From Bugula neritina (lineage: Eukaryota > Animalia > Bryozoa), in the NCBI GenBank assembly GCA_964035545.1, contig OZ037765.1, positions 21,204,995 through 21,268,994 of the forward strand: DNA of 64,000 bases, given 5' to 3'. Of this stretch, positions 3,040 through 60,010 are shown in pieces. Each line of letters opens with the position of its first letter. Position 1 is the first letter of the stretch. The notes beneath the pieces are model-generated. The model saw only the letters and a list, made by a program, of their open reading frames with translations. It was not told where the DNA came from and did no database searches. Position numbers and translations under genes: made by a program.

Positions 3040-3790
3040 CGTTACTATTAGTATTATAATTATTATAGAATTTATTATAATTATAATAAATTATATCATT
3101 ATTACAATTATATAAATTATCAATATAAATTATATTATTATTAATATTTTTATTAAAATTACTCTCTTTATTATTTATAACTATTACTATTACTATTAGT
3201 CCATTATCACTTCATTATGAACAACATTGCTACAACTAAACACTGATCTAGTAATACCAATACTTATACTAATAGTAATACTAATATTAATGTAATAGTA
3301 ATAGTAATACTAATGCCAGTATTAGTAATAACAATATCAATGACAATATGAATATGAATAATACTAATACTAATTATTTATAACTATTACTATTACTATT
3401 ACTCATACTATTAGTCCATTATCACTTCATTATGAACAACATTGCTACAACTAAACACTGATCTTCATCTAGTAATACCAATACTTATAGTTATACTAAT
3501 AGTAATACTAATATTAATGTAATAGTAATAGTAATACTAATACCAGTATTAGTAATAACAATATCAATGACAATATGAATATGAATAATACTAATACTAA
3601 TAGTAATACTAATACTAATAGTAATAGTTATAGTAATAGTAATACTAATACTACTAATACTAATAGTAATACTAATAGTAATAGTAATACTAATAGTAAA
3701 TGTAATAGTAATAGTTGTAACAATATTTATACTCTTATTTATTGTTGAACTATGTTATTGCTACACTAACTACTAAGTATTTTAATAATA
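3040..3790. repeat. Degenerate period-3/6 tract (AGTAAT/ACTAAT class) in inferred MRPL17 intron 1; contains a ~200-bp tandem duplication
   Basis: Runs such as 'agtaatactaatagtaatagttatagtaatagtaatact'. 3170-3372 is repeated at 3373-3599. Confidence 0.85.
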
Positions 3791-4020
3791 TTATTGCTAT
3801 AATTAGTAAAATACAAATACCAAGAAGCTAATGTAATAATTGTATTCTTCATTGATTAATTTGTGACCAAGTGAAAGAAAAATAATTGCGTTGGAAACTC
3901 AACATGACAAACTCACCGGCCTTCACTTAGCCGATGAGCTTAGCTTTCTTTGCAAAAAAGAGGTAAATAGAAGTGTTTTGCAGCTCGGTGCATTATTACT
4001 CGGTCAAGGTAACACTAGCA

Positions 4021-4033
4021 GTTTCCAGGCAAC
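4021..4033. promoter_or_regulatory. RFX X-box-like motif in the MRPL17/CCDC166 bidirectional promoter
   Basis: GTTTCCAGGCAAC (reverse GTTGCC-T-GGAAAC) fits the RFX consensus GTNRCC-N0-3-RGYAAC/RGNAAC. It lies ~530 bp upstream of the CCDC166 ATG. Confidence 0.55.
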
Positions 4034-4551
4034 CATGATAATATCGCAAAATTGAAGCGCAAGTGTCTTACTACTTGCCTGTGCAATTGAAGTTACAGAT
4101 TACATAGAGAGTTTCTAAGGTTAATTTTAACTAAATTCAAATTATAACTTTTTATATTTATAGTCATATTTTTTTCACGTTTGAACACACGTATCAAACA
4201 ATCAAAATTTGACAAAACTTAAAACACAAAGGCAAATTAAAAATGGCTAATTGAAATTCAACTTTATCCTGCACCTTTATCAGCAATATCTTTAAGTAAA
4301 TATATTGACATATATAATTAACATATTATACACAATAATTATGTAGAGTAATAATTTTCAAACTGTTTCTAAAAGCATGCAACTCAATTTGATTTTTTTT
4401 CTAAAAGATTAACTTAAAACAAAGTCAAATGCACTTATAATTTGTAAATTCCTGAAGTTTTATGTAATCAAATAAATTATTTTCTATTATTGCTAACACA
4501 AAAGTTTTTAACTTGAACAGTTTTAGCAGTCAACAGTACCATTTCTACATA

Positions 4552-6739
4552 ATGCCACCCAAAGCAAAAAAGAAGGGTAAAAAGAAAGGAAAGAAGGCTG
4601 AAGGGTCTAAGCCTGAGCCTGGTATACCTACAGACAAAGAAGAAATAATGCAAAAAGAGTAAGCAGTAGCTGTAAAAAAACTCTTGATTAAAATTGCTTT
4701 GATATTTGCAACACCTTAGCAAGACCATGTTTTAGCATTTTGAGTTTATGTAATTATTATGCATGTATACCTCTTACTATGCTTTATATGATATGGGTAG
4801 TAGCACAACAATGGTTTTCAATTTTGATTTGTGTAGAAAACGTAATTTTGATTGTTATATTGTTTTTAGACTAGATGCCTTAACAACTGAGCTTACAACA
4901 TTGAAAGATCGATGCTCAGAATTGTATCCTTAAATAAAGGCCAAATTGTCCTGTTCAAAAGATTTGGTGTTGACCCATAGCAATCTGCTAGTGCAGTAGT
5001 TCTGTTTAGGTTGTATTTTTAGGCTGTGCTAACTTTTGTTCTTATACCTGTTTTAATTATAACTTTTGAAAAGCATAATTATTTTCAAATAATTATTTAT
5101 CCTTGACCAAATGAAAAGACGAAACCAAAACAACTTTCTCCAACAAGAAGCAGGAAAGATCCGAACAGAAAGTGTAAGATATTAATATTCGAACTTATAA
5201 TTTCAATAAGATTTACGCATTCAATTGCAGACTCACCACTAGGGACACAAAATCTGCCATTTAAATATATTAACATTTATTATCAAAATTTGGTTTGTTA
5301 ATTTTAGCATGAGTATATGAGTTACATGGAAAAAAAGACTCATAAAAGACAAACTTCTATTATTACACTGAGTGATCAAAACACTAAAGAAATACAAGAC
5401 ATTAGAGACCAGCAGGAAAGAATGTTGGCTACATATGAAGAAAAGAAGTCTAAGTTACGAGCCATTATGCTTGAAAAAGAGGCAGCCCTAGCCAAAATTA
5501 AACAAGAGTTAGATGACTTGGGTGATTATAAGGTATTTCCACGTCAAAATAGGATATTCTAGCAAACTAGATAAGGTCAAATTTTTTATGTGTTAATTTA
5601 GTTTTATAAGCTAATTTAGATGAGATTTTGCTCCAATAAACGTGAATGCCTTTAAAATAATAATTGACATAAACTATGCTGTGTGTGAGGCCAATGCAGC
5701 CTCCAAATAAGGGTTTCCCAATGACTAATCATAAAGCAGTTCTATTGTTCAAGACAATCATGCAACATTTCACAGCATATGCAGCATCTCTTGGTGCTCT
5801 GCTAAAGATGAGTAATTTCATAATAGTTATAACATAATATAATTTACCAATATACCCGTGAACTGCAACAAAGCATCAACAATTGATTATTGTCAAAATC
5901 AGTAATACTGACTGAGCCACGCTCTATATAATAATTTGCTCAACTTGTAACAACTAAATTTTTTCTAACTGTATCCTACTCATGTGACGATACTTTTAAT
6001 TGTGCAAAAATTAAATCTAGCTACATGCATAATCTTATGTTGAAAAATAGAGCTTTAAAATAGCAATGATCAACTCCATATTTTTAGAATAATAATTCAA
6101 AGGAACAAAGCATGTAACATCACAGGTGCTATCACAGTTTACATGTAATATTTTAGAATCTACAGAGTAAGCAGTTAACCAGAATCAAAGAGTTGGAAGC
6201 AGAAGTGACGCAGATGAGATCAACACACACCAGAGCAATACAAGATCTTAAAAATAAATTCTTGGAAGAGAAACGATCTTTTCAGCAAGACTCGGACAGT
6301 AAAATTAATACGATGACAAAGTTGGCTAGCAAGGTGAGAGGTGTAGCTAATACAAGTAGCAAATGAACAAATTCCTGAACAATTGGATCTGTTTCTTTTT
6401 CGGTATTATACTTTAAGACTGCAGATTCACTTAGTTATAGTTTACCAGTTTTGTATGGTTTTGTAGGAAGCTATGAGCTGTTTGAATGAACACACAACCA
6501 AAATAAAGTTAGAAAACAGGCGACTCAGACATGCTCTTTTGAACTTGATCAGAAAATCCAGAGCACTGAATGAACAAAAGGTAGAATTAGAAGAGCAAAA
6601 GAAAACCTTGCTTCGAGAAAAGCAGTATGCTGAAGATCTTAAAACTATTCGAAGTACTAGACAACATAAAATACAGAATGCTTTAGGCTTAGATGTTACC
6701 CCTAATCCTGAACAATTTGATATCTCAGATGAAAAGTAG
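4552..6739 (+). CDS. CCDC166: Coiled-coil domain-containing protein 166-like (DUF4515/BBOF1-CCDC121-CCDC166 family), 6 exons
   Basis: Exons 4552-4658, 4870-4923, 5119-5173, 5308-5532, 6157-6333, 6467-6739: MPPKAKKKGKKK...NNFLQQEAGKIRTES|HEYMSYMEKKTHKRQTSIITLSDQN...LGDYK|NLQSKQLTRIKELEAEV...KFLEEKRSF...HTTKIKLENRRLRHALLNLI. This is collinear with my recollection of vertebrate CCDC166. Confidence 0.78.
4924..5118 (+). other. U12-type (minor spliceosome) GT-AG intron
   Basis: 5' splice site GTATCCTTAA at 4924. Branch site TTATCCTTGAC at ~5097-5107, ~10 nt before the AG at 5117-5118, with no polypyrimidine tract. Splicing keeps the CCDC166 frame. Confidence 0.88.
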
Positions 6740-6849
6740 CTAGAGAATATCTCGTATACATGTATTTGTTTAAATTTTATAACACACATCATATTTTGAT
6801 AAGCATGTTATACAATAGTTGTATATATTGACTGCTAAATGTTTTTATT

Positions 6850-7767
6850 TCAAAATATACCAGATTTTTTACACAGTTCAACAATGTCCATGTGTTTAAA
6901 CTCATTGGGGTTAGTTTGCATAGATTTTACCAATTTAAAATTCTCTTCACTTCCGTACATGAATTGCGTTTGATGAACTAAAAGTGTTGCTAATTCAGGT
7001 TTCAAATCCTCCTGGGCAATCTCCCCTTTCATAAGTACAATACCTTTAGCACTGGCCAACTCTGTATAGTACTGAACGCACAAACTGTAGGGAGCATATT
7101 CTCCATGAGTTTGGTAGGCAAGTAGTGGTGTGAAATACCAATCATCATTTGTACACTGGCCTAGCATAAACTCATAGCCAGATTCTCTAGGTAAGGCATA
7201 CACAAACATCGGGCACTCGTTACCCTTCTCTCGTAGACGGTGATACTTCTCAACAGGCAATGTGGCAAATAAAACATTTTCTTTAGTAGCATAGTACTGG
7301 TTCCATATTTGTGCAATCTCTTCACTAGATTTGACCTGCAAAAGCTCAAGCTTAATAATTGAATCCAAACTTTTTCGCTTCGACGATTGCGGTGTTTGAG
7401 AATGACTGGTAGAAGAGCTTTTCATTCTTTCCAGGACTGAAGATCCTTTCACATCACTTTCAACCTGTTTTGCTTCTACTGGTTTGTTTTTCTCTCCGTA
7501 TATTTTCTTCATAGCAGCTTCATACTCTTGAGGTTTGCTTTGCTTGATTTTCTCTAGCTTTTCTTTATATTTGTCATAATAAGTGTTTTCTTCGATAGTT
7601 GGTGCTGCTGGTTTGTCATATGTTGATAATTTAGCTAAATGAGTCAACAATGCTGAAGTTGGTTGGTTAGCAGCTGAAGCAGCTGAAGCCGCTGCAGGTG
7701 CTCTTATATTGAAAGCTGCGTTTAGTAACCTTTTTGCATGCATGTCTGATAAATTTCCACTAGCCAT
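6850..7767 (-). CDS. ATPAF1: ATP synthase mitochondrial F1 complex assembly factor 1 (ATP11 family); CDS in a single exon
   Basis: Uninterrupted ORF with NTYYDKYKEKL, KSLDSIIKLELL, IAQIWNQYY, CPMFVYALPRESGYEFM, FTPLLAYQTHGEYAP and KGIVLMKGE (ATP11 domain), plus an Ala/Arg-rich presequence-like N-terminus. Acceptor at 7780; upstream exon donor at 8730. Confidence 0.93.
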   Translation of the reverse strand: MASGNLSDMHAKRLLNAAFNIRAPAAASAASAANQPTSALLTHLAKLSTYDKPAAPTIEENTYYDKYKEKLEKIKQSKPQEYEAAMKKIYGEKNKPVEAKQVESDVKGSSVLERMKSSSTSHSQTPQSSKRKSLDSIIKLELLQVKSSEEIAQIWNQYYATKENVLFATLPVEKYHRLREKGNECPMFVYALPRESGYEFMLGQCTNDDWYFTPLLAYQTHGEYAPYSLCVQYYTELASAKGIVLMKGEIAQEDLKPELATLLVHQTQFMYGSEENFKLVKSMQTNPNEFKHMDIVELCKKSGIF

Positions 7768-8239
7768 CCAAGTGTTCACCTAAACATGTACACAGAAAAT
7801 TTACTTACAGCAATAAGAAAAGTCAATCAAATTAATAATAATAACACAACAGCAACTATGCTGTCATTACTACAACTAGTTGACACAATGTTATATGTCA
7901 GTGTTGTTCTGATAGTCAAAATTTCGAAACAAATCAACATTTTGAATACCTTAACTTTAAGGCCTAGAACTAAATGGGGCTTACACAATTGAAAAAAAAA
8001 TCACTTCACCTAAGAATGTTTACTCTATAAATTGATTCTAGCCCCACTTTTAGAAATTACTTCCCTTTAGTTAAGCAGCTCAACAACGTGCAGTTGATAG
8101 ATGTAATCAGTAATGATAATCATAATTGACATGCATTTACAAGCAAGTTGTGGGTTTTTATACCCTTAACAAACTAGCAGTAGTTGGGCGCAATTAAAAT
8201 GATTTTTGCATGGCTTTGCTTTAAATAAGTCAATTTGCA

Positions 8240-8630
8240 GTTATACTGTTACTGTCATACTTGTAGTAAATGTAATACTAGTTTAGTTAATAGTAATACT
8301 AATAGTATTACTATAAATATAAGTATAACTAGTAATAAAATAGTAATAGTAATACTAATAGTTATAGTTTATACTTTATTAGTTATACTTATAGTATTAG
8401 TTATAGTATTACTAACTCTAAGTCTAATAGTAATAGTATTAGTATAAGCATTACTATGTTTATTACTACTACTACTCAGTAGTAGTAGCAATAAACATAG
8501 TAATACTTATACCAACACTGTACAGGTACTACTACTAGTAGTACTAGTACTGTAGTAGTAGTAGTAGTACTAAGTACTATAACTCAATACATTATATAAT
8601 TATAAATATTACTATTAGTAGTTGAGTGCT
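8240..8630. repeat. Degenerate period-3/6 tract in inferred ATPAF1 intron 1
   Basis: 'aatagtaatactaatagtattactataaatataagtataactagt...gttatacttatagtattagttatagtattact'. Confidence 0.8.
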
Positions 8631-8729
8631 TGTTAGTTAATACTTCTACAAATATAAGCAACGGTTATAAATTACTCTTTATTTTAAGTCAAACTTAGGG
8701 CAATAAAATGAAAATGCAAATTAAAAATA

Positions 8730-9175
8730 CCTTCACAGAATATTATAAAACACGACTCTGAAAATGCAAAGTTGCTCATAGCCTCTCGCAAAGAAATCTA
8801 TTGATAACCAGGTAAAAACTTTAGAATGTGTTGAGACGTCAAGCCACCAATCAGCCTTCACTACTTGGTTTGTTGTCCAATCCAAGGTGGTACTTTGCCG
8901 TGTAACCCTTTAGCCCAATCAGAGTGGTGACATCGAAACAAGCGCGTGATTAGATCGGTGCCATGCGGATTTATTTACTTTCACTCGTGACTCAAAGTCG
9001 AAGCACTGGTACTTTGTAACTCAGCCCATCTGGTTTCACTCAAAATTAAAGTCAGTGACTTGTTTCACATATGCCTTCTTTAATATTGCTATTACTTTGT
9101 ACAAACTGAGTTATTTGCTTTTTTTCTTCTGCGTAGTTTAAATTTGTTTAAACTATTAAAGCCCTGTAGACTGTA
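8730..9175. promoter_or_regulatory. ATPAF1/ATIC bidirectional promoter with three CCAAT boxes
   Basis: Locally GC/CpG-richer island between divergent genes. CCAAT at 8847, 8877 and 8915; CRE-like GACGTCA at 8835. Outward-facing donors at 8730 (- strand) and 9173 (GTAAGT, + strand). Confidence 0.65.
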
Positions 9176-9189
9176 AGTGTAAGTGGAAT

Positions 9190-9860
9190 CTAATACTAAT
9201 AGTAATAGTAATTGTAAAACTAAAAGTAAAAATAATTTCAAAGTCATCATCAAATTCAATATCAATATGAATATCATTATTATCATTAACTTTATCGGTG
9301 ATTATAATAATGATTATTGTTTATTGACTATCAATGTTAATATCATAATGATTAAGTGATTATCATTATCATTATGATTTAATTTTAGGATATTGATTAT
9401 CATAAATATGATGAAGTAATTACTAATTACTATTAGTAATTAATATTATTATAATAATTATGATGACCAATTGATACTCATATCTCATGCTGATACTGGT
9501 ATTTGTGGTGATACTCATACTGATGCTCATAGTCATTGTGATTGTCGTACTTATAGTTATAGTGATAGACCATAGTGATCCTCTTGACTCGGTAATATTA
9601 ATTTTAATACTGATTCTCACACTAATAGTAATACTAATAGTGATACTTGGTCTTATAATCATAGTGATACTGATGGTCATGATGATATTGTTAGTGATTG
9701 TCATACTCATACTGAAACTTATAGTCGCACTCATTGTGACGAAGGGACGTTGTGATTTCGATACTGATGTCATGTTGATGCTCAGCCTCATAATCATAAC
9801 TCATCTTCAAAAATATTAGAACACTCTGGCAACACCTAATAGTAATAACACAAAATTAAT
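9190..9860. repeat. Degenerate period-3/6 tract in inferred ATIC intron 1
   Basis: 'atactcatactgatgctcatagtcattgtgattgtcgtacttatagttatagtgatagac', i.e. (AT-N-[C/G]T-N)n. It yields the spurious I/V/L ORF 9487-9819 and I/S/T ORF 9423-9797. Confidence 0.85.
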
Positions 9861-10046
9861 GATTGCCTCTCCGTGATCATCTTGTGTTGTTTTTGTTTAA
9901 GTTTATTGGAATAAAACAATTCTAGCGTGTAGCTAAGTTAAGTTTTAGGTTTATTTAACTGAGATGTATAAGGTCTAATAGCACATATCTAAGCTGCGTT
10001 TGTGTTAACTCTTATGAGGTAGTATCATCAAATCTCTAATCTTTCA

Positions 10047-18008
<7,962 letters not shown>

Positions 18009-27300: not shown

Positions 27301-30214
27301 TTGTTAGTAAAAAGGCAATGTTGTTGCAGAATTACATTGATGTGTATTGTTAGAGGACTCTGAACAATAGACTATCAGCTCTCAGCATAAAGGAAATGTT
27401 TGTAGAACAGTATGCTAATCTCTAACAACTATTGGGGGGATTTAGACTGCACTGGTAGGGCCCAAGTGTTGAGCAATGGGAGTGTGGTGTAGTTTTAAAC
27501 AGTTGAATGATGAGATTATTGGAACTGGCCACTTACATAGAACACCATTTTAGACTCTAAGTACTGGGCTATGTTTATCATAGAAGCTTTCTCCGCCATT
27601 TCACAAGGGGTTTGCCTGGCATTATTTTCAACAAACATGGGGGCACCCAGTTCAATTAACAGCTACAAAATAAAAATGGTTACAAAAGACAGCAATCAAA
27701 AGCAATAAAACTGTGACAACTAAACAAAGCGAGCAAAGAAGCTCATACTACCAGTAGAATAGCTTGGGGGTTTGGGGTTTGGGGTTTGCTGCTACTTTAC
27801 TGTTTAGCAAGCAAAAATAGTACTTGTTTCAGTATTGAATTTTATTGAAATTTAAAGGTTTTAAAATTTAAATTAAACTTAAAACTTCGAATAGGTGGTT
27901 ACCAAGTCTATACCATGCAAACAATGGTCTGTAAGTCAATGGAACTTGTGGTTGCATAACTGACTGGTTAAAGTAGGGAATAAGGAAGTTGGGAAATTCT
28001 CAGTTATCAGCACACTAATGCTATTAGACTAAATGATTGGAGCAACCAAGCTTATATACTCAATTATTCACACGCTAATAGCATTATATTCACGTAGGAA
28101 AACTGCCTCTACTAACCTTAACACAGGACATGAGCCCAGCTTGTGCTGCGTAGTGCAATGCTGTATTTCCCAACTACAAAATTCATCAACATTTACCTAT
28201 TTTCCTTCAGTTATTATGAAATACAGCTATTTAAATGTAATGAGAGTTGATAAGGGCTGAACTACCAATAGTAAAACTACCATGTATATATAAAGATTCC
28301 CGAATATATAAGATAATTGCAGCAGCATACTAGCTACTATTAGCAGCTAATATGTTGTAGGTAATATATAATAGTATTGTTTGGTGTGAGTAATAGTTAT
28401 AGGTAGTGGCTAGTTATATATAACTACTAGTTAGTGTGTAGTTAATAGTTAAATGTAGCCACTAGTTGGTATATAATCAATAGTTATATATATGTACCTA
28501 CTAGTTAGTAAGTAATTAATCTAGGTAGTAGGTAGTAAGTATTATGAAGGTAAGTAGGTAGTAGATGTTGGTATGAAGGTAAGTAGATAGTAGATGTTGG
28601 TATGAAGGTAAGTAGATAGAAGATGTTGGTATGAAGGTAAGTAGATAGTAGATGTTGGTATGAAGGTAAGTAGATAGTAGATGTTGGTATGAAGGTAAGT
28701 AGGTAGTAGATGTTGGTATGAAGGTAAGTAGGTAGTAGATGTTGGTATGAAGGCATGCAGTTAGATGTAGTTCAGAGTTCATAGTTTGTGCAGGTGATTA
28801 GGGATAGAATAGTTGCACAAGACACTACAGGCACCTGCTACTGGATGGCATACCCAGTGCCTACCAGCCACTTCAGTTGCCAAAAAAGATTTGAAAGAGA
28901 GCATGCGAATACCAATGTGTGGATAGTCAGTATATACATAAATAGAGCTATTTGTCTCTGTAGTAGTCAATAAATGGTAAGCTATTACTCATTCTTAACT
29001 CACTTATTGAAGTCATCAGTGTAATATCATTATTAAAATTTAATCATATTTCAAATGATTTGGCCATCTCTAAGACTAAATTCAAATCTAGAGCTTTTAA
29101 TCTAAATACTATGCAACTATGTTCAGATATCTTTTGTGCAGACCTTGTCTTGGGCTGCAACATCCAGTTTCTCATGAGTCCCATCAGTTAGGAGAGACCC
29201 CCTCCAATTTAGTAACATATTGACACACTGCTCATTGGCTGTTTTGTTGGCATTTGTGTGATCACCACTAAACTGACAGGCACAATGTAAAGAGGATTCA
29301 TTGTTCCCGTTTTTCTTGTTTGGATTGCCATCATACTCAAATAAAAATAACCTGGAAACAAAAGATCTATTTTAATAAGGAAATATGTAGACAACAGCTA
29401 TGTTTGCAATGACATCAGCTGTATATATTTGTGAAATAGATTAGGTTTAATCCATTAGACAAATCCTGAAATAAAATAAATTTAACCTAAAGTCTAGTCA
29501 CCAAAAGAAAGAAAGTCATTTCAGGAAATGGCCATTTGCCATTAAAGTTTAGGCAACATTCATGAAAATGGAATGGCATAGGATTGGAAAAACACAAAGG
29601 AGAGTTGTTAATGTTTGTGTGATGAGTCATACGAATAGCTAAATTTATAAAGTTTTTATGAGTTGAGCAAAAAATATTAGTAATAATTTAAAATTCATAT
29701 ATCATTGTATTGAAATACACAACTTGGAAATTACTTGGCATGCAAAGTAGTTGAATTCAGTCATGATACAATGATAGCTACATCTCAACTGTAGACTTAA
29801 CTGAAAAAGTCTGGTAAATTCAAAAGAAACCTGTTGGAAAATTAACTATTTTTGCCCAGTAATTTGTACATTTAATTCCTTCAAAAATGGTTCATAGCAA
29901 CATTTGCGAACGTTACTACTTTGGATTTCTCATATCTTTCAAAACTGTCAACACTGTGATTCACGAGGATATTTTTAGTGAAGAGTTGGGCAAATACAGT
30001 TCATATCTAAATGACCCAGACAGTACCTGAGGAGTCGATGCATAGAATGTCTAGCCACTAAATGCAAAGCTGAATCATGGTTGTATCTGTCACCATAAGA
30101 CACATTAGGATCAAATTTCTTGTGAAGATCTTTATTTGTGTCAAATAAAGACAATGCTGCTGTTTCATCTCCTTTAACTAACTTCTTTTTCAACTTTGAA
30201 CCTGAGCTTCCCAT
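18399..30214 (-). CDS. ANKIB1: Ankyrin repeat and IBR domain-containing RBR E3 ubiquitin ligase, 19 coding exons
   Basis: Exons 30027-30214, 29144-29351, 28117-28173, 27537-27662, 26002-26194, 24228-24394, 23986-24074, 23528-23672, 23096-23347, 22638-22784, 22051-22272, 21599-21859, 20967-21119, 20458-20575, 20217-20342, 19884-19998, 19507-19619, 19019-19246, 18399-18649. Contains MGSSGSK start, ankyrin repeats (GNTALHYAA), LESKMVF, RING1 (CEIC...CEHSFCQTC), IBR (WCPHPGC...GHAFCWMC), RING2 ([19 protein letters not shown]), Ariadne-like region and UIM ([11 protein letters not shown]). The C-terminal exons are less certain. Confidence 0.93.
22848..23092. repeat. Degenerate (GT/CA)n microsatellite filling most of an ANKIB1 intron
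   Basis: Interrupted GT repeats with a duplicated 'gtgagtgcccgtgtgtgtgcgcgtgtgtg'. CA-rich on the sense strand, starting right after the donor at 23095. Confidence 0.88.
28525..28753. repeat. 29-bp minisatellite, ~7.5 copies, in ANKIB1 coding intron 2
   Basis: Unit GATGTTGGTATGAAGGTAAGTAG(A/G)TAGTA; copies are nearly identical. Confidence 0.93.
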
Positions 30215-31959: not shown

Positions 31960-32620
31960 TAAATTGTCAATACTAATAGTATTATAAAACTAAATAGCAA
32001 CATCAACATAAATATGATAATGAGAAACTACCCAACAATTAATACTAATAGTAATACTGACAGTCACTAATTCAAATTGGCTTACACTTTTAGTTTTACT
32101 AAGTAAATCAATTTTACAGCTGCAGTAACTCTAGTATAAGAATTACAAAATGGTATCACATGATCACTATAATTATCATTATGATTATCATAATGATAAT
32201 CATTACGATTATCATTAAAATTATGATTATTTTCATAATAAAAAACACTGTACTAATAGTAATAGTAGTAATCATTATAAGTTTATCAGAGTTCAGTAAT
32301 AGTTGTAGTATTACACTATTACTATTAGACTTAGAGTTAGTTAATTAGTATTAATATTAATATTATACCTTCAACTTAGGACTAAAAGCTAAACAAGAAT
32401 CTGAATTAGATCAGTAAAACTTTAAGTAACACTAACAGTTGATGTTTATGTTATGACTTAGAGTTAGAGCTAGTCTTACACTTACAGTTAGTGTTACTCT
32501 TATGAGTTAATAATAATCCTATCAATATCATTTCATTATGAGTTTACCATTATGATTATTATAACATAATCATAATGATAATGATAATCATAATGTTAAT
32601 AATATTATTCCAAATCAAAT
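31960..32620. repeat. Degenerate period-3/6 tract in the inferred ANKIB1 5' intron
   Basis: 'atcactataattatcattatgattatcataatgataatcattacgatt', 'actaatagtaatagtagtaat', 'cttacacttacagttagtgttactcttatgagtt'. Confidence 0.8.
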
Positions 32621-32679
32621 TAGTTAATTACAAATAATTCAAATTGAAAATTTTATTCATTGTTAATAAATTATTCACC

Positions 32680-33050
32680 CAATTTATTTGCTTCTCTGAA
32701 TAATTTACAGTACGAAGTATATGCCTGTAATTTTCTGCAATGACTCAACCTTCTGTAAGTAAAAGCCACTGTACTGTAAGACTAAGAACAAGCCTTTGTC
32801 ATGATCTTGTTGAATGTAAAAAATAAACAGAGACCAAAAGGTCAAGAGTTCGCATGCAGTTTCCGTTGCATTGTAGACATAAATTCTAAATCTATAAATG
32901 AAAATGTAAGGGTGTACAGTATACATATCGTTTAGAAAAACTAATGGGGATTTGAAATAAAGAATAATTATGTGGCTCGCGACATCTCTCAATAAAAGTT
33001 GCAGCCATATGTTCACCTCAAGTTGAAGTGTATATTAAATTTAATACTTA
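32680..33050. promoter_or_regulatory. Putative ANKIB1/NT5C3 bidirectional promoter
   Basis: Higher-complexity island between divergent genes and between two periodic tracts. Contains TCGCGA at ~32977 and a candidate minus-strand donor (G|GTGAAT) at ~32677. No transcript evidence. Confidence 0.45.
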
Positions 33051-33199
33051 TATTGTGATTATATGAAGTTTAATTTTATTTCACTGTTTGAAATTTTATT
33101 TTATGTTTTTGATGTGTATTTTAATTTTTTTACTTTGCTCAAACTGAAATGGAACACAGTACATAGGCAGGATCTGCCTAGCCCTATGACTTGTCTTAT

Positions 33200-34200
33200 C
33201 ACTTAGTCTTATGTCTGTTATGAGTTACGAGACTGAGTATCACTATGACCATCAGTATCACTAACAGTATCAGTATCTGTATGAGTATGTATAAGTATTG
33301 TGTTCTATTTTGGTTTCTTCTTTAACTTTGAATTTGTGTTACTTTTATTTTTAGTTTTAGTGTTTTATTTTTGATTAAATTTTAATAGTTTTAGTTTTAA
33401 ACCAAGACTTAGATTTAAATTACCTTTTAGTTGTAGTTCAAGTTGTACTTGTGCTTGCAGTTTTGAATACTGGCAGTTTATACTTTAGCTCTTAGTGTTT
33501 TGACTTTTGATTTTGCGTTATAACATTAACTTGAGTATCAGTATCGCGTATGATTATCAGTATCACTGACATTATGACTATGGCAGTATATCTTAGAGTT
33601 ACTCTATAACTATGTCTATTGGTATTAAAATTAATATGTGATATTACTATTAATATTAATTATTAACCATTATAATATTATATAATTATTATATTTATAA
33701 TAACGATTATCAATATTAGTTTTAGTATTGCTTATTATTATGAATGTAAATATATTATATTTATTGTTACTGTTGGTATAACTAATACTTGATGTTATAC
33801 TGTGACTATCAGTATAACTCTATAGATTATAAGTATCAGTATTGTATTTACTATTGCTTATTAGTATTACATCTAATTTAGTCAATATAACAATAATACT
33901 AATAAGCAATAGTAAAACTAAATGCAATACTTATAGAGTTATAGTCATAATATTAGTATAAGATGAAGTTTCTATTAGTATCACTATCAGTATCACTATT
34001 ACAGTAAATAATTAATGCTATTAGTGTTAGTATACATTCTTACATAAGTAAAAGTATTACTTTTAGATTACTATCAGTCTTGCATTTACTGTTAACAATT
34101 TAAACTAGTTATTTATTTATTAGTACAAGTATTAGTACTACTATTTTAATAACTTGCTTGCTTTTGGTATTACTATATTTATAACTATCATATTACTGGC
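33200..34200. repeat. Degenerate period-3/6 tract in the inferred NT5C3 5' intron
   Basis: 'gagtatcactatgaccatcagtatcactaacagtatcagtatctgtatgagtat', 'agtatcactatcagtatcactattacagt', i.e. (N-A[C/G]T-AT)n. Confidence 0.85.
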
Positions 34201-41600: not shown

Positions 41601-44565
41601 TTACTGAAGGCGAGCTTCTGCCGGGATTGGATAAGCCATCCCAAGGGGATGCCCAGCGGGAGAGATGAAATAGGGGGGCACGGTGTAAGCGCCCGTCACA
41701 GCAGGAGCCTGTGAGAAATCAACACCGTATGGAAAGGCGTAGTCAGCCATGTTGAACTGCCCAGTTGGACTAATTTGTTGAGGAGTTGGTAGAATTGGCA
41801 ACTGAGGAAAAGGTACCACGCCGGCTATTCCTGGTATATAATATGGCGGCTGAGTTCTGCAAAATATAAGATATTTAATACTATCAGGGGACAATTCACA
41901 ATCTAGAAGTTAATATTTACTGTGATAAAACATAGCATGACGTGATACACACAGCAGCCATTAGAAACATGGAGAAGATTTGCAAAAAATGAGAATTATT
42001 CTAGCAATTAGAATCACTCTTGCACTCCAAATAGTCAAACAACATCAACACTGATTGTCAGGGATAAGCATGCAAATAAAACCCATACAATATATTTTAG
42101 TGATCAATCCTTGTGCAAATTCAACTACATTGCTTAGTTTAATGGCCATCTGTAAACTGTTGCCCCATTCAACTAGTCATTTGTCCTCATGTTTGAGAAA
42201 CTCTATTCAACTGAATAATACTTCATTTCCCAAATGCAGAGTCTTTTATACTTTAAAGAACAGTTTGAGTTTAGCAGAAGCCCAAAACAAAAGGTAATTG
42301 TTCGAGAATCTTTGAAGGAACTCTGCCAAATAATCAATGGAGGTTCTAAGTTATTATATTTTGCTCCTATCTTCAATGTAAGTCAACAAAGACACTCAAC
42401 AGTTAACCTGCACCAATTAAATTAAGGTGCCATGTTAGTGAATTCACCCACTAAACTGAGTATTCTTCAACAATTATTGTAATTACAAATCTAGTTTGTG
42501 CAAGTTTAAAGATAATGGGTTACAGAGTGGAATTGAAAGGAACAGATTGAATTTTAACGTGGTTGTGATTGCTTATTGCTTATCACCAAGTTGAAAACAG
42601 AAATCTGGCAGTAAAGGCAACTCACTCCACACTACAAACTAACAGAACACCAACTCTAAATACTGAAATAGACCTGTTTTTACGGAGAAAATAATGGCTT
42701 CGGTCGTTCATCACAGCCAATCAACTTTGTAAGCCTACCGAGCCTCCAACGTGGTTCAAACGTAGGCACTGCTGACAGATATACATACAATGTTTATACT
42801 CTACTACTAACCAGTAGTACCTAAGTATCACTCTACTTTTTATTTTCTTAATAAAAGTTTTTAAGTCTTATAGAAGTTTTTAAATTTTGTAGAAAGCAAC
42901 AACATAGCAACTTGCTATTTGTTATAAATGATAAGAAATGTAGCAGTGATAGGTAAAGCTTTTAGATAAGTAAATAAATTTGTATAAATAAGTTAACTTA
43001 CCCTAAACCCTGACCATATGGAGGCACAGAAAAGGGGGTGGTTGGCATTGCAGATGCTAAAACATAATATTAACTAACATGAAAACTATTTTACATTTGT
43101 TGTTCATATTTAGCACACATCAACTGTAATACTCAATTTTATTTGGTTCACATTTATAAAACAAAGGTCACTGTCTATGAGAAACAGAATGGCAAATGCA
43201 ATATGTGGTTCATGTCAAATTTAGTACTTTAATCACAGGAGTTTTGGCACCTTCTAGTGCACAGGGCTTTATGTACTAAAAGCATGTATGATAACAACTA
43301 TGTTACCCAGAATACTTTCTTTTGTGTCTTTCTGAACAATGCCAAGTCAACATTGATATTGATGATGTAAGACTAACAGAAAATTACAGGAATTTTCCAT
43401 TAGGGGTCTATAGGCTCTATAGCTGGCTTCTGAATATTTATTCAAGTAGATCTACTTACTAGTTGAGACTGTTGTAGGTGTGCGAGCCTTGGCACCCAAA
43501 TAGGCAAGATTTACATTAGCTTTCCTTCCATCAATAACTGGATTGGGGTCTTTGATAGCAGCTTGAGCATCATTTGGGTCAAACATGGTTACCTGCAAGC
43601 ATTATTCAAAGATAAATATTTCTTTGTTTGAAATATTCTACTGCTGGTCATTTAATCTGATGTCATGCTTAATTATTTTAAAACAAAAAATACTATTACA
43701 AAATTTGACACTTAAAAATCAGACGGTCATTATAAAACAATAATGTTGAAGGATTCAGTTAAATTGCATTGGTGTCAATGTTGGGGCTTGATATTGGCTC
43801 TCAGATTGAGTTCGCTAGTAGTACTTGTGTAAATAACTTGAGGGTATTGATATTAGGATTACACACTTAGCTATATATATTTTAGGTAAACAAATATCTT
43901 GAAACTATCCCTTATTCAGGACCTCACCAATTTTAGAAACCCAACAAGAATGATGTTTAAGTTGATCAACAAAACCCTGGTTTTCTCAAGAATGAAAATA
44001 TTGGCAATATTGGACTTGGCAATTGAAGCTATAAGATTAAGTATATTCATATTAAAAACTTTATTTGCCAATTTGAATATATATTTATATTATATATATT
44101 TCTAATTCTTGCAGTAGCAGCATTTAATTTTTGGTATTTTAGGTACATTTATTCCATATTAGGAATGTCCAACTAGTAACTGTGCCAATGAAATTGCATA
44201 CAACAAAGTAGTGAGTATCAGTATGGCTGAATGACTACAAGAAATATCTTTTAAATTACTTCCATGAAAAGACTAACTTTAAGGATCACATTAACTCATT
44301 AAGTTCAACTATAAATTATAACCATAGAATACCAAAAAGAAACATTCTAGAAAATTGTAAATTAAAACTAAATACTCTTAACACTTACAAATCCATAGCC
44401 TTTACTTTTACTCGTAGCTCTGTCAGTGATGACTACAGCTTCTTCGATTTTGCCATACTGGTCAAAGTGTTCTTTTAAAGTCTGGTCGGTCGTGTGATAT
44501 GGCAACCCACCAACAAACAATTTAGTGTACGTGGTATCTCTATTTGTTATTCCTGGACCAGCCAT
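41601..44565 (-). CDS. RBM24: RNA-binding protein RBM24/RBM38 (SUP-12 family), 4 coding exons
   Basis: Exons 44389-44565, 43460-43592, 43002-43056, 41601-41856: [22 protein letters not shown]...[20 protein letters not shown]|VTM...[22 protein letters not shown], then a Pro/Tyr/Ala-rich tail ending EARLQ*. Confidence 0.92.
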
Positions 44566-44744
44566 ATTACTGAATTTACAAATAAAATAAATAGGCACAC
44601 AAATAAATTAGAAATTACACACTACACTCAAAGCAAATGAACACAAACTAAAATCTACTTTGTATTCTGCAACCTATAGATTGACTGAGGTATTTTAGTG
44701 GTTTCACAGCCTTTAACTGCTACTTATTTACACTGTTTGTATGC

Positions 44745-44815: not shown

Positions 44816-47007
44816 GCCTCTTACTTTTGAACTGTCCACAAAAGATTTGCATTAAAATTTATTGCCCGTGGTTTTCTTAGTGGTTACTGACTGTACATGT
44901 ATAGTTAGAGTGTGCATTATATTATAATAGCCTTCTAGTGGTACCCACGGCATAAGTTTATCATGCAAACTACAGTTATTAGTCACAAAATGGCTTGACA
45001 AGTCAACTTAATTTGCATACCTTGCCTCCTATTGAAACAATATAATTGTAGACTATATAGAGATAATAATATATAAAAGTGTAGATGCATCTGCTGTAGG
45101 TAAATAGGGTAATAGTTGAGCTAACTTTAAAATAAAGCTTATTGTTGAAAAGAACCGCAGGTACTACCTGTTTTCTTAACCTGTCAGCATCACACCGAAG
45201 GTGATTTAATATTTATAAGTATTGATCTCTATTACTTATTAGTAGTTTAAATTGGTTTCTTATATAGTTTATACTTATAACTACATGGTAATAATTCAAT
45301 TAAAAGCCTATTGCTTTGGTATGAGGATTGGGTCTTCCTAACCCATGTCTTACTGGCCAATAACAAATGTGATATAACATAGAATTTGATAGTCATGGAT
45401 CCCTGATACCTACGACGTGTGAGTGTGGTGAAGAACTAAGTGTTAGTAGTCTGAATAATATGCCTTCGAAAGTAGGCACCTTAATTACTTCTAAATTTGA
45501 CATTTATGGCAGGATTTGCTGAACAAAGGATAGCACTCTTCAAAGCTCTCTGTACCTGCAGTTAATCTGCTGCCGTAACCTTTATCCATCCGAAGTAATC
45601 AGGCTATGTTGTTCTGCTTCCGATGCAGTCCTGATTTTCTTCATAAATATAAAAACCTGCATGCAAAGTTATTAATTATGTGCAGTATAATGTATTGCAA
45701 CTGGTAATTAGTGACACAAGGCCAAACAAGCTAGTGGCTTTACTTTGCTAAACTGCATTCCTACCTACACCTTACAATTTGCACCTAAATAAAGACCAGC
45801 TCCTTTACCTGTAGCCACCTAACTTGGATAGACTTCTGCTTATTGAAAGCTGCATGTATTGTGAAGACAATTTTTAGAGGTAGGCGCAGAATTGGAGAAA
45901 TTAAGAAAAGCCTGTGTTTTAGATTAGAAATGTAACAAAAGAAATTATATTCTCACAAGAATTTTAACTAGCACCCCAAACCAAAATTTAATAAAATAAT
46001 TAAAGAACTTAGGCCATCTCAATTTTTCCCTTACTGCTTCTATAAATGGATCTTTATTTTAATCTTCCTGCTCATTCAACATATACATAATATCACAGAG
46101 CACTTGATGCTAGTTTGGCTAATCATAGTGAAACCTAGCTTCCGTATATAAGCTACTCGTGAGTCTTTCTTAAAAGTGTTATCATACACTCCCTTCAAAA
46201 GACACTGAGCCAAATTGGCAGCTATTTCTATACTTACTATAACTCTATAACAGGTCTATTGTTAGCAAAAAGATATGTGCAGCATATTATATAAAATTAA
46301 ACTAATAACAGATCATACTTTACTTAAGTAAAGTAGATTTTCTACAAACATTAATGCTATCTGTTTTTAGAAGAGTTGATGTTTAGAGTACATGAAACCA
46401 TTTCCTAAGGCTAAATACTAAAAACACAAGTTAAAAGAAAATTCAAATAGATGATTGTAATTGTCATAAGCCCTCAGTACATCATCGAAGCTTCATATAA
46501 AAATAGTGAATCTAGTAGCATGTATTTCAATCTGTTTAGCTGTAGTTGCTATGCAAGTTTATATTGGCCACCATTGTTGATAGAATTCACATCTTATAGT
46601 TTGTTAACTCCTGTTAATGTTTACTTTGTGCAAACAAAGCTTAAACAAATTAGTTTAGTATCACTTGCTATCAAACTCATTTCTAAATCTAACACGAAAA
46701 AATAATAATACTTTCAGATTATTCCAACTGTTAGTTGCAACTGCGTGATACGCTCTTGTGTAACTTGCTCAATATAAGTGCATGTCATGAGTCATCAAAA
46801 GCAGTGTTTTAAAAAATTGATTTTACTACCAGCAGGTCTGACTAAAGCTTATTTATTAAGCAAAAAGCTTATGATTGACCTGTCTACAGCTGATTAAACA
46901 CATCAAGCAAGGTGGTGGAGAGTGAAATAATTGTGCATGTGAAAAACGCTGGTTTTTAGGTGTAGATATTTGTTTTGCCTTCAATCTCTTTACATAATAC
47001 AGCGTGA

Positions 47008-47717
<710 letters not shown>

Positions 47718-47759
47718 AATAAGTAAGTAAGTAAAATTAAACAAGTACAATATACTACA

Positions 47760-48340
47760 AAAACAAGAAAGCTCAGACCAGAGCTGCAGAACTGCCAAAA
47801 CTAGATACAAAATTATTAATCCACACACAAGCAAATACTAAACACTACAGGTTTCCTATTCGTCTAAACTTATTGATGGACAAGTTATTTCATGACTAGC
47901 ATTGACTCCTGCATTATTCTATTTCTCTGGCTAATTTAACAAATATTAGCAAAATATTAGGATGCTCATGGGGAGACTAAAGTACAGCTGAATTGTTGGT
48001 AAATTGACATTTCCTGTGTGAAAGGTATGATGAGGATGAGTTAATCAATTTAATTTAATTTAATTAGTAATTGATAAAAATATGATGAGAAACTGCATAA
48101 AAGTTGCAGTATTTTAATGCATAAACTTTGCTATTTCCTAGTTAAATTTTGGTCATTCTGTTGCACAAGTATAAACATTTTAGGCATACTACACAATATT
48201 TCAAATTTGAATTTAGCAGATTATGCTTCTCAAAAAATCTGTTTATGACAAAAGCAAGAAAGCTCAAAACAGAACTGCAAAACTGCCAAAACTAGATACA
48301 AAATTAGTAATCCACACACAAGCAAATACTAAACACTACA
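47760..48340 (+). repeat. ~90-bp imperfect direct repeat pair (47760-47849 and 48251-48340)
   Basis: Both copies carry CAAGAAAGCTCA...ACTGCCAAAACTAGATACAAAATTA.TAATCCACACACAAGCAAATACTAAACACTACA. Confidence 0.85.
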
Positions 48341-51300: not shown

Positions 51301-51610
51301 TAAATAGTATATAATAAGATGGCACGAATAACTAATTGGGGCTAAATATATTGCAATTGTATGCTTGTTAACCTCAAAAACTACTCAGGTACCAACACAC
51401 TAAGCCACAATTTATTTGAGGAGTAAACAATACACTCTATGAGTAAGCAGGATAAAAATCCTCTGCCAGTCAAATCTGACTTTATAATCAGGCAGTAAAA
51501 TATTTCTTGATCTCACACTGTAGGTTTCACCGAAAATCCCTCATAAAAAGAAAAGAAATGAACCAGGAAAAGACACAGAACTGTTAGTTAATTCTAAACT
51601 CTAAATACAT

Positions 51611-54600: not shown

Positions 54601-57600
54601 AAACAGTGGCACTAAAATAATAAATAATGTAATAATACACAATAATAAACTCTACTTGCTTTTACACAAGTGTAAAAGCTAACAGAGTTTAGCAATTTAG
54701 CAATCCATATAACTATGTAGACCGATAAATATTTTAGAAAAATTAGCAGGCTTAATAACAAAAATCACCATAATTAGCGTTACATTTTATTTTGTGTAGA
54801 GTAATAAAACACACACTATGAGCAGCCCGTAAAGTGAGATATCTAACTGCATGTAACAAGCAACAATTGTATGCCAATTTTAGAGAAGTCTGATCTTGTA
54901 CAAATTTATGTTGCGAAAAAATATTTATTACTCAAGACTGCAAAAACGCCATTATCCTGACTGAGTATATTGCTATCACAATATAGCATTAGCTACATGA
55001 TCATATAAAACGACTGCAAAACATTTAAAAAGCAGTAGCTAAATATTACTATCGTTATTTATTGAAAAGCAAGGCTGTTACTTACCAGCAAACAAACATG
55101 ATGTTAGATTGATATTCCAGACCCACCGCTCTCCATCCATCATCTTGTACATACTAGCTGCTACGTACCCAGCAACACCTGTATAGGTACATATGACTGT
55201 ATCACTAATAGTGACATATGGCTATATCACTTGTAGATACATATGACCAATTCACTGATAGTTACATATGACTATATCACCGCTAGCTACATATGACTGT
55301 ATCACTGAGATTGATGTACAACTTAGAAGGAAATTGATACAACCACTACAATAACCACACAGTTATTATAACAGAAGTTATAATTCAAATATTCTAAAAC
55401 CCGAAAATAAACTAAAACAAATTTATTATGTAGTACTTTGAACCTCTGAACTCTGCAAATAACAAAACAAATAGAAAGAAAATATTTTAAATTACCCGAC
55501 GTGAAGGCATATAGGATGATAGCTGCTGTATTCAACTGGCCATGCTTGTGGACGTTGAATGTGCCGAGAAGAGCCAACAGAAGACAACCGGTGGCTACGG
55601 TGAGGAACTGAGAGCCAACACCTGTGATACAGAGTGCACACATACAACCACAGTGGTACAAACACATTTGGTATCTATATACTTTATGTATGAAACTTCA
55701 CCATCATGTTACAATTCTGAACTGTATTCAAGAAAACAAAAACAGTAGAGATCGTAGACGCAAAACTAAAAAGTATTTATGAAATTTAGCCAATAAATAG
55801 CCTTTTTTGGTGTAATGACGAGAAAAAAACTTATTTTACATAGCTGCTAAGATTGTAAAACAAGTAATAGATATGTGCTAAGATGTCTAGACTTGAGTGA
55901 GTTTACCTAACACTGCACAGAAGAGACTCTTCTGCTTGGGAAACCTGAAGACATCAGTGTGAATTATCTTCCAGCCATTATCTTCCTGGTCTTCTTCAGC
56001 GTCCATATCATCATTATACTTAGCAAAATCATTCTTCAACACTCTAGACTGTAAAATATTTCCCCGATACTCGAGCATGATAAAATTGAGAAAAAATCAT
56101 ACAAACCTTGATTTGGCTTTTAATATTATAGATAATTTTAACTGATTCAAGAATAGTAGCCACCTGCATTAACTGAACAAAAGTCATCAGTACATTCAAC
56201 GATGAACATTTGCAGGCTGTAGTAACACATGCAACTACCAAACCAATGTAGATGATTATAATATGTTGGTGATTACATTACTCACCAGTATTATGACGAC
56301 GAAGCCAACTAACAGCACTATTAACACCATTGAGTTGATGACAGAGAGCCAGTGAATCTAAAAATATATGAAGCAACCATCTAACTACATGTACTTGTAC
56401 AATATTTAGCTAATTATGAAACTCTCAGTAACAAAATATGAGGTCATGTTGTACACACAGCCTGTCAAAGCATACAAACCTCTAGTGTCTGTGGAAAGAA
56501 CTTAGATTTCTTGATAAATGATGTTCTATCTTTTGTTGTAGCTCTAAAAGTACAATCAGAAAATGACTTCCATAACTCTTGTGGTTGCCAAAAAATGAGT
56601 TCAAATTGTATGATTGCAAGAGCATGAAGTTTAGATGAAGATGATGAGAAGTAACCAGCTAGATTTTAACCCCTACAGCACCTAATCACTTAGCTTCTTC
56701 ACAAGAAAACATGCAGCTCAAACTTGTAAGAATTCAGTAAATAATAAAATATTTAGATAGACAAGATAAGCTGCATGCGCCATTAATCAATGTACTAATA
56801 CAACGTTCGTTTTAAATTTATGCATAATGAAAAGCACAAATATATGCAGCATAAGGACATATTCTCTGTTTTAATTAACACAACCTACACGCACTTAAAG
56901 TAACAGTGAAATCATGCTGGCATGGGTGTTAGCTATAAGGCAAATATTTACTCACTCTGTAGCTTTCCATGTAACTGAGTAGGAGAAAGTAACTACGACA
57001 TTAGGGTTCTCTTCTGTAATATCTAACGCATGGTTTTCAGAAGTTGAAACATTCGCCGTTATTATCTAAAAAACATGAAGTAAGTGCTGCACACATATAT
57101 ACAACATACATATTATAGTAGAATTATGCATGACAAAGGCTCTGTAACGTAATGTCTGTAACACAAATTACTTCAATGGTGAGCCTGCCAGAGATATGCT
57201 GTGCAATTGCTAACTACTTGAGCAAACATTACATCTGAATACAATTAGGTGAGCCTTTACTTACATTTTCACCATTGTATTGAAACGTGAAATGCAGTTT
57301 AGTATAAAGGTACATCTTATGCCTGTGAGGGAGAATGCCTTCCTCACTGAGGTGTCCGATGAACCCTCGAACTGGCAACTCATCTGCAAGAACAGTGACA
57401 TTGCCAATGAACAACAGGTAAAAATAGGACAGGCGCATATTGTTATGAAGCAAGAATGAAATAATTGAAGCACTATATGTAAATATAGTACCCATTACTT
57501 TTCAGCTCTATGACAATATCTTCAGCTGTAAGATTTGCATTGACTGGTACGAGGGAAAAAAATGAAGTTGAACAGAGAGATGGTCAGAATTTTGATTAAT

Positions 57601-60010
57601 AAATACATTAACAGCCACAAAATTAATAGATATATGCAATTCTAGAACAACTCTTCTCATGCGAAACTAGATAGCTGATTAAAAATTAGTCATTGTCTTA
57701 CTGGAATCTTCCATCAACTGACTCAGTCACTGACTGAAAGTGAGTCATTACAACTGAATCTCACCGTCTGTTGCAGAACTTACCAATTACAAACTCAAAG
57801 TAATATAAATCTTCAATAGCATCCCTGATCTGACCCAACTGCTCGGCACTGTAAGTCTTGTCACACAGCTTCACATCTTCAACATTCTCTACAATAACTT
57901 GAGCGTATCAGACTTGATACTTGCATAGTATGGATGTGAACTTTAATACTTTATGTGTGACAGCTTACATATCATTAAAACTTTCAAGAAAAGGGCAACT
58001 ACTTGAGAAAATGTTGGAATCGGCAGAACTGTCAATATGTATAACATATAAAGTAATATTAGAAATATTGAAGTACCTCTTCGTCATTGTGCAGAGTAGT
58101 ATCTCATTTTACACACAAGTCTCACAATAGCTTTACAATACAACTACAACTATGTTTTATCCTAATTTTTAAACAATAAAAACTGTATTGTTCTCAAATT
58201 AAAGAATATACAAGGCTACAATTTTCTACCACATGAATCATATGTAGCTAATAAAAACCAACCTTAAGATTATTTTTACTGTCACTTGTCATACAAAGTA
58301 AAGCCTATAGCCTATTTCATGTTCGCTATGTTGAGTGAAATAAAGTAGCAGTAATTTAAATGTTGCGGTTGTCCCAAGAATACAATAAAGTAAATCTTAC
58401 TTTTGAACTCAACATTATACAATGACTTTGCCATGCGATCTCCATCCAACACTTCTCCCAAAGTCAAAGCTTTGTGCTCAATCTGGAAATGGAGAAAAAG
58501 TCTTTTTAGCCGGTCTATATTGTATATTAATAGCTGAAACATTTCTGATTGCAACAAACTTCACACACAGTGTTACTTGAAACGATTATAAAATTGTATG
58601 TTTGATAGAGCATAAACTCATTAGGAATGTTATAATCATCTTTGAGAAGATTTCATCAAACTCTCATGCCAATGCAGCACAATTCACACAAAAATCTACA
58701 AACCTTTTCTGGACTGCACACTGGTATTTCATAGTAGTGGTAGGTTTCATGCACATTGAAGTACGGACCGACTTTATTTACATACACTTCAACCTAGAAC
58801 ATATAGGCGCATAAATACTTATGTTACCAAAAGCTTTTCTAGCTCCACTGCTTAGCACTCTTTTCAATAAAAAAAGCTTCATATTTACTTACTCTACATA
58901 ACATAAAGTCAAGTAAACTGCAAAAAATAAACTTTACAACATATGAGGGTGAACATATAAAATAATTATGTTATTGCAGCATAAGTGATACATTGAATTA
59001 TGAATGCAAGTGATTACATCTAAAAAGCCTAAAATATAGTTCTAATGAGTATGGCTATCATTACAATAAATATTACTATAAATATAATCTAATTTTATGA
59101 TACAAAAAATAGATGTAAACCAAAATGGTACAGTTCAAGTTAAGACAACTTTTACTACCACGACTAGTACTACACAGTCTAACAGTACTATACTATTTTT
59201 GTTTAAACCACAATAGTAATAGTAATACCAATAGTTCTTATAGGCATAGTCATATAGTCACTATCATAGTAATAGATTAGGTCAGTCATTTAGCTACTAA
59301 TATTGATAACCATAAACTGGAACTCAAACTGATAGTACTAGTACTAGTTGTTAGTAATACTAGTACTGGTACTAGTAGTAGCATTGGTAAAAGTAAATAA
59401 CTAATACTAATAGTAATAGTAATACTGTAACTGTAAGTGACTGTAAGTGTAACTGTTGGTGTCAGTATAGTATTACTATTATTCTTACTAATAGTATTAG
59501 TGTTACCATTAGTATTAGATTTTCATTCAGTATTAGCATTACTATTACTATTAATAATACTGTAACTTACAGTGTAAGTGTATTACTATAACTATTACTA
59601 TTATAATTTTAATTAGTTACAACTTACATCAACATGTAGTAGCACCATAAAAGTAAAACTATAACTAAAACTTAAACTCAGTAAAACTAAATATAAAAGT
59701 TAAAATATATCAAAATGCAAGCAAGCACTAGCACTAAAAGTAGCACTCTGACAGTGACTCTCAGTCTCACTATCACTCTGAGTCTGAGTGTCTCAGTCTC
59801 ACTCTCACTACGACTTGAGCAGCAAGTGCAACTGCAATATTATGATGTATATAAAATTTATAACAAAATATATATTTACGGTACATCGTTAGTGCTAATA
59901 GCGTTTACCTTGTCATTTTCTTTAAAATTAGCAAAAGCTGACACTTGAAAAACGAATATAATTAAAATAAAATACAAGACATTGTAACAATTTCTAAACA
60001 ACGTAGCCAT
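51611..60010 (-). CDS. TM9SF1: Transmembrane 9 superfamily member 1 (nonaspanin/EMP70), 15 exons
   Basis: Exons 59909-60010 (signal peptide), 58704-58793, 58401-58482, 57784-57888, 57265-57383, 56956-57065, 56480-56543, 56286-56357, 55907-56048, 55496-55621, 55086-55178, 54501-54611, 53997-54159, 52968-53159, 51611-51812. Motifs [77 protein letters not shown] and C-terminal YANIKMD. Confidence 0.96.
55187..55310. repeat. 25-bp degenerate minisatellite (5 copies) next to a TM9SF1 splice acceptor
   Basis: Unit approximately ACATATGACT(G/A)TATCACTNNTAGNT. Confidence 0.85.
59150..59830. repeat. Degenerate period-3/6 tract in TM9SF1 intron 1
   Basis: 'actaatagtaatagtaatactgtaactgtaagt', 'aaaagtaaaactataactaaaact', 'actctcagtctcactatcactctgagtctgagt'. 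Confidence 0.85.

Follow-up and report, generated by a model that had tools for sequence, protein, structure and literature searches.

CpG islands are compositional domains that lie at the promoters of broadly expressed genes in CpG-depleted genomes. Periodic non-coding DNA is represented by the PATCs of C. elegans, An/Tn clusters with a period of 10 (PMC4947018; bioRxiv 10.64898/2026.08.08.743475), and spliced leaders are known from nematodes, flatworms, tunicates, cnidarians, rotifers and chaetognaths (PMC7986045, PMC3795323, PMC12460157), with lengths of 22–39 nt (PMC3795323) and of 46 nt in Hydra (PMC7986045). Here we analyzed a 64-kb window, that is, the whole stretch of 64,000 nucleotides of the bryozoan Bugula neritina under study, together with the genome from which it derives (GCA_964035545.1, 216.0 Mb in 321 pieces; the published assembly tzBugNeri2.1 comprises 216.00 Mb, 9 chromosomes and 20,264 coding genes, PMC11480708). 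Judged from the abundance of its motif, a 6-bp-periodic tract appears to be carried just behind the promoter by thousands of B. neritina genes.

A first-pass annotation of the window had pointed out six such tracts, which we could confirm at 3040–3790, 8240–8630, 9190–9860, 31960–32620, 33200–34200 and 59150–59830 (tracts 1 to 6; z scores of 7.3–13.5 against dinucleotide shuffles). A model-free scan over the whole window, in which a C/G indicator was autocorrelated at lags of 6 and 12, recovered the six tracts and the two edges of a (GT)355 microsatellite, and a Markov detector called the six tracts alone. In leave-one-out training of the tract detector, five of the six were recovered and the ATIC tract was missed. 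GT-type microsatellites elsewhere (L015, L019 and L063) also trigger the autocorrelation detector and were removed by eye. Repeats of the ordinary kind are likewise found in the window: the (GT)355 microsatellite is nearly perfect and lies upstream of the RBM24-like gene (47004–47713), and intronic minisatellites are located at 15099–15238 (15/30 bp), 28543–28753 (29 bp) and 55183–55308 (25 bp).

The annotation had proposed a period of 3 and 6 bp, of which only the latter stood: the C/G indicator reaches an autocorrelation of 0.31–0.48 at lag 6, whereas its lag-3 values range from −0.10 to +0.15, the signal there being one of purine/pyrimidine only. The phase fades over about 40 bp. Within the slot, the choice between C and G is random (280 same and 265 opposite pairs at lag 6, and likewise at lags 12–24), and both orientations alternate within each tract, whatever the strand of the gene. 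Neighboring strong bases are under-represented, as are A/T runs (observed/expected of 0.68–0.74 for AA and TT), runs of four or more A are fewer than in the background, and the overall composition is CpG-poor (GC of 0.19–0.30, CpG observed/expected of 0.27). The proposed lack of alignable homology also held, as at most 4% of 20-mers are common to any two of the six tracts and no transposon or satellite consensus could be aligned among them, which indicates that they are not one repeat family. Neither termini nor common flanks were seen among the tracts, and most are without long internal repeats. A coding role was rejected, since the open reading frames within the tracts encode low-complexity I/V/L or S/T/I runs that are broken by indels in a sibling Bugula type.

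We went through the spliced gene models one exon at a time. Gene bodies display CpG observed/expected values of 0.20–0.40, compared to 0.48–1.0 in the promoter regions. Tract 1 lies between the promoter region of MRPL17 and its acceptor and ATG (2001), and this CpG-retaining region (3800–4250, CpG observed/expected of 0.79) is inferred to be divergent and shared with CCDC166, with a tract on the MRPL17 side only. Tracts 2 and 3 flank the divergent ATPAF1/ATIC promoter region (8640–9180), which has a CpG observed/expected of 0.75 and two CCAAT boxes and differs from the sibling type by 7%. Similarly, tracts 4 and 5 lie on either side of the presumed divergent ANKIB1/NT5C3 promoter region (32630–33190), tract 4 preceding the acceptor (about 30273) and ATG (30214) of ANKIB1, and tract 5 the acceptor and ATG (34554) of NT5C3. 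Tracts 1, 4 and 5 each precede an acceptor near the ATG, an arrangement which fits both an outron and a cis-spliced intron, the latter lying within the 5′ UTR for tracts 4 and 5. Tract 6 resides in the cis-spliced first intron of TM9SF1 and begins about 77 bp past the donor of coding exon 1 (59908–60010, minus strand), which encodes 34 hydrophobic, signal-peptide-like codons and reads on in frame into exon 2 (about 58796). Beyond the TM9SF1 promoter (60300–64000), neither a gene start nor a tract was evident. In addition, the 3′ ends of CCDC166 and ATPAF1 converge (6465–7781), and a single RNA contig joins both, which suggests that their 3′ UTRs overlap.

As the annotation had claimed, neither detector called a tract in any internal intron within the window, nor at CCDC166 (start codon 4553–4555, plus strand) and RBM24 (start codon of the RBM24-like gene 44565–44567, minus strand), which thus serve as negative controls. 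Both genes possess an acceptor close to the start codon in the absence of a tract. Together with the location of the TM9SF1 tract in a cis-spliced intron, this indicates that the tract follows the promoter and not the splicing mode.

The annotation had further placed the tracts about 20–130 bp behind the first splice donor in the five cases in which it could propose one. This was the case for TM9SF1, with its coding exon 1; it was not for ATPAF1 and ATIC, whose tracts lie in outrons and whose RNAs carry a leader at the downstream acceptor. We aligned RNA contigs of three studies on positions 4700–10640, the RNA status of these contigs being guessed and their source type being about 5% divergent. 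None of them covered the first exons formerly proposed for the two genes (8680–9077). ATPAF1 contigs extended past the AG at 7780–7781 (minus strand, 13 nt before the ATG; runs X11 and X14) into 15–21 foreign letters, and an ATIC contig carried the same 15 letters directly before the AG at 10551–10552 (plus strand; run X17), where the first coding exon (10553–10595) starts that is spliced to 11833 (joint in runs X14 and X17). The ATPAF1 outron would span 7782–8800 (minus strand, 5′ limit approximate), a stretch without RNA contig cover outside repeat-matching bins. The leader itself has no meaningful match within the 64-kb window, and a pattern scan of metagenomes yielded unrelated chance matches only. 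According to these alignments, the ATPAF1 and ATIC RNAs appear to be trans-spliced to a common leader, which replaces their promoter-proximal stretch; since both genes take the spliced leader, tracts 2 and 3 lie in outrons.

A genomic source of the leader was found by searching 17 nt of it, which returned five exact matches, one of them (L008) apparently by chance. One match continues into a GT donor (L012:1447–1650, C8:12439940 onward) and belongs to an SL RNA gene family of at least 27 copies, most of them with a GT donor, clustered on C8 (11.85–13.14 Mb), C3 (31.46–31.63 Mb) and C5 (8.08–8.32 Mb). Copies on C3 constitute a subtype of their own, and those on C5 look degenerate. Most of the genes share a layout of a variable 71-nt exon (L012:1447–1517), a GT donor, a conserved 3′ part and a common upstream element, and would encode an RNA of about 204 nt. 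The portion seen on RNA, the last 15–21 nt of the leader, corresponds to the 3′ end of the 71-nt exon. The AG/GT at the leader end is invariant in 21 aligned full copies, and nearly all copies end in AAG, in line with the WWG end used as a spliced-leader criterion (PMC3795323). The 23-nt leader read from RNA has no genomic copy within two mismatches, which fits a segment that varies among the SL copies. We found no canonical Sm site (AU4-6G) in the conserved 3′ part; variant Sm sites are in use in Hydra and Schistosoma (PMC7986045). The consensus folds into several hairpins (−39 kcal/mol) with weak covariation (compensatory change in only 4 of 48 pairs), and no Rfam match was obtained.

Four further copies consist of the leader exon only, break off where the donor would follow and are joined to LINE-like elements whose ORF1 contains a PHD finger (L065, C5:10536234; L066, C1:13822982; L067, C9:170649; L010, C1:19052657). 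The ORF1 of L065 is open over 340 aa, and an endonuclease-like ORF2 follows ORF1 in the two copies read far enough. The most plausible origin of these fusions is reverse transcription of trans-spliced RNAs, and they define the 5′ end of the leader. An adapter artefact was considered as the origin of the leader and rejected, as the leader is encoded in the genome with a donor and is fused to genomic LINEs. [quoted passage not shown] No published report of spliced leaders in Bryozoa was found in a literature coverage that is incomplete, and the system, while well supported, is apparently new for the phylum.

All four leader-bearing LINEs, which were found via the leader alone and without a tract criterion, are situated inside a tract or no more than about 600 bp from one (chance probability of 2e-6 to 4e-4). 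In addition, one MITE-like inverted-repeat element interrupts tracts at two loci (L066:430–920 and L024:70–570). As such insertions are heritable, they point to access in germline or stem cells, and they suggest that the tracts lie in germline-accessible chromatin.

Genome-wide, the 18-mer (ASTAAT)x3 has 16,970 matches, compared to 0.8 expected from non-tract DNA, without strand bias (8,723 forward and 8,247 reverse). The first 100 matches fall into about 24 loci over 1.6 Mb, which extrapolates to roughly 3,000–4,000 loci; as the 18-mer is present in only four of the six window tracts, this number is a lower bound. Among the same first 100 matches, 8 were pure repeats where free choice would give 25 (p=2e-5, the overlapping matches being non-independent). 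This under-representation and the random C/G slot bear out the earlier view that the tracts are too degenerate for a microsatellite. At locus L022 a CpG-rich, promoter-like stretch is followed by a tract and then by an acceptor and ATG, and at L010 a tract lies upstream of the acceptor and ATG of an RS-domain gene. Among the matches listed, two of nine proteasome, UBC and L7Ae genes on C1 had a tract motif within 6 kb upstream (p about 0.005), both of them proteasome genes with motifs 1.5 and 5.7 kb upstream, compared to none of ten homeobox and forkhead genes, a comparison without statistical power. Gapped searches for AAAATGGC and the CCAAT box beside tract motifs gave rates of about 1% and 0.3%, no higher than chance, and this null is probably uninformative, the motifs being too uncommon or too unspecific. 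Intronless proteasome and UBC matches were also obtained on unplaced contigs (C85, C66, C114, C110, C175, C95, C39, C272, C278 and others); they carry in-frame TAA/TAG, consistent with contigs of a cobiont using the ciliate code.

To follow the tracts in evolution, we compared the window to the orthologous locus (L002) of the sibling Bugula type, which is about 7–10% divergent in non-coding DNA. For the ATPAF1 exon, a relative at 94% clusters with B. neritina ATPAF1, and the nearest named relative is Watersipora subatra (59%). The sibling type keeps the three checkable tracts at the same positions. Watersipora and two other bryozoans, by comparison, show no tract in the whole ATIC/ATPAF1 promoter region (maximum lag-6 autocorrelation of 0.11 versus 0.52), in agreement with the lineage restriction that had been proposed. 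The ATPAF1 contigs analyzed from other bryozoans are all genomic. The other bryozoans sampled retain the acceptor that immediately precedes the ATPAF1 ATG, and the gene order ATIC-ATPAF1-CCDC166-MRPL17 is kept in Watersipora (among L004, L005 and L006), with a retroelement-like insertion between ATIC and ATPAF1.

Although kept in position, tracts 1 and 2 are largely rewritten in the sibling type, with an apparent divergence of 28–34% in one alignment, compared to 7–10% in the flanks, and of 8–17% plus 19–27 indels under cheaper gaps. Indels in multiples of 6 are enriched in the tracts (21 of 59 versus 7 of 51, p=0.009). The differences within tracts preserve the S/W class more often than those in the flanks (38% versus 22%), a figure that depends on the alignment of low-complexity DNA. 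Tract 1 moreover contains a recent 203-bp tandem duplication (3170–3601, 202 of 203 identical), whose copies already differ by indels of 12, 6 and 6 bp, that is, by three indels to one substitution. These results indicate that the tracts are built and rebuilt by duplication and deletion in a 6-bp register, with a phase that is blind to strand and to C versus G. Swaps between ACT and AGT could arise from micro-inversions.

The best reading of these observations is that the tract is a DNA-level element that takes up the first 0.4–1 kb of non-coding sequence downstream of some promoters, irrespective of whether this sequence is an outron or a first intron; the absence of strand bias argues for DNA rather than RNA as the level of the signal. 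Given the random C/G identity and the rarity of pure runs, plain slippage would not yield such tracts. We favor, with a probability of roughly 0.45, a chromatin mark that would be built by slippage and kept by selection. In this functional reading, duplications and deletions in the 6-bp register would build and rebuild the tract, and selection would retain a strong base pair, C and G alike, at every sixth position of the phase. Minor-groove or shape readout separates strong from weak pairs and not the orientation of a pair, and such a readout or a repeat-binding protein may accordingly provide a reader blind to strand and to C/G identity. The tract would hold the first kilobase open and CpG-free between the CpG-retaining promoter and the CpG-depleted, presumably methylated gene body, and would thereby act like the C. 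elegans PATCs with a different period and origin. Against this reading, the other bryozoans manage with the same promoter and no tract, and indels outrun substitutions, as a purely mutational engine predicts.

Such an engine is the closest competitor and, at somewhat longer odds, a serious one. Transcription-linked breaks or single-stranded DNA behind germline-active promoters could be repaired by slippage and template switching, thereby seeding and sustaining micro-inversions and duplications in 6-bp register and leaving a neutral footprint devoid of function. The excess of multiple-of-6 indels and the indels already present in the young duplication agree with this explanation, as do the interleaved, self-pairing orientations (fold z of −1.8 to −6.4), the insertion of mobile elements at tracts, expected of break-prone or open sites, and the confinement of the tract to discarded RNA. 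A neutral footprint leaves unexplained, however, why the period should be 6 across tracts of 19–30% GC in a genome that also grows ordinary (GT)n, why pure runs are under-represented and why other bryozoans have no tract.

A signal in the outron RNA seems improbable. AU-rich, self-pairing or ACUAAY-rich RNA might mask cryptic donors or recruit the SL snRNP and so favor trans-splicing, but a sense-strand bias is absent within and between tracts, tract 6 sits in a cis-spliced intron behind a coding exon, and the tracts hug the promoter, ending 350–1750 bp before the start codon. Least probable of all is that one transposon, minisatellite or telomere-like repeat family colonized promoters and has since decayed into the tracts, for which their thousands of copies in only one of the lineages sampled and the precedent of Helitron minisatellites giving rise to PATCs (bioRxiv 10.64898/2026.08.08.743475) may be cited, but which is at odds with the scarcity of shared 20-mers, a widely varying composition and the lack of termini, shared flanks and, in most tracts, long internal repeats.

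Returning to the selected chromatin mark, a fuller version of it can be put forward only tentatively: a strand-blind and C/G-blind 6-bp code would mark the chromatin downstream of the promoters of broadly expressed genes, as a substitute for CpG islands with a reader of its own, atop a trans-splicing system of independent origin whose leader is unusually long and whose RNA lacks a canonical Sm site. If functional, the tract would allow promoters to be found from sequence only, in an animal whose start sites vanish from the mRNA. With a bryozoan example, the phyla in which trans-splicing has repeatedly arisen would grow by one; bryozoan gene models, promoters and 5′ UTRs would have to be reread, and the question of operons arises. 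Leader priming would also allow full-length cDNA to be obtained from symbiont-rich colonies.

Compared to described spliced-leader systems (PMC7986045, PMC3795323, PMC12460157), the one of B. neritina is similar in its common leader on unrelated mRNAs, its AG acceptors, its multicopy SL genes with a GT donor and the AAG end. It differs in its phylum, which those papers do not list, in the length of the leader (about 71 nt, compared to 22–46 nt reported) and of the RNA (about 204 nt, compared to 75–123 nt), in the absence of an AU4-6G Sm site and in a leader fixed in genomic LINE copies, the latter akin to the leader-bearing transposon transcripts known in Hydra (PMC12220107).

With regard to the tracts, CpG islands share the position at promoters; in contrast to them, the tracts are AT-rich, periodic and located downstream of the promoter, and their CpG observed/expected ratio lies well below the value of more than 0.6 used as the island test. 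Microsatellites, minisatellites and cryptic simple sequence are similar in slippage in the register of the unit, fast turnover and length change in multiples of the unit, whereas in the tracts the units are not copied, pure runs are rare, orientations are mixed, and both period and position are fixed. A further likeness is to PATCs (PMC4947018; bioRxiv 10.64898/2026.08.08.743475), which are likewise abundant, degenerate, periodic and lineage-restricted and occupy transcribed non-exonic DNA of a trans-splicing animal. As had been anticipated, period and motif differ, the PATC period of 10 being one of An/Tn clusters and the tract period of 6 coinciding with a depletion of A/T runs; the Bugula tracts are moreover confined to the promoter-proximal kilobase, with no transposon source seen. 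As periodic non-coding DNA close to promoters, the tract would be a variant not described before, with a putative function; if this function holds, it would follow PATCs as a second, mechanistically different example of periodic non-coding DNA that marks active genes.
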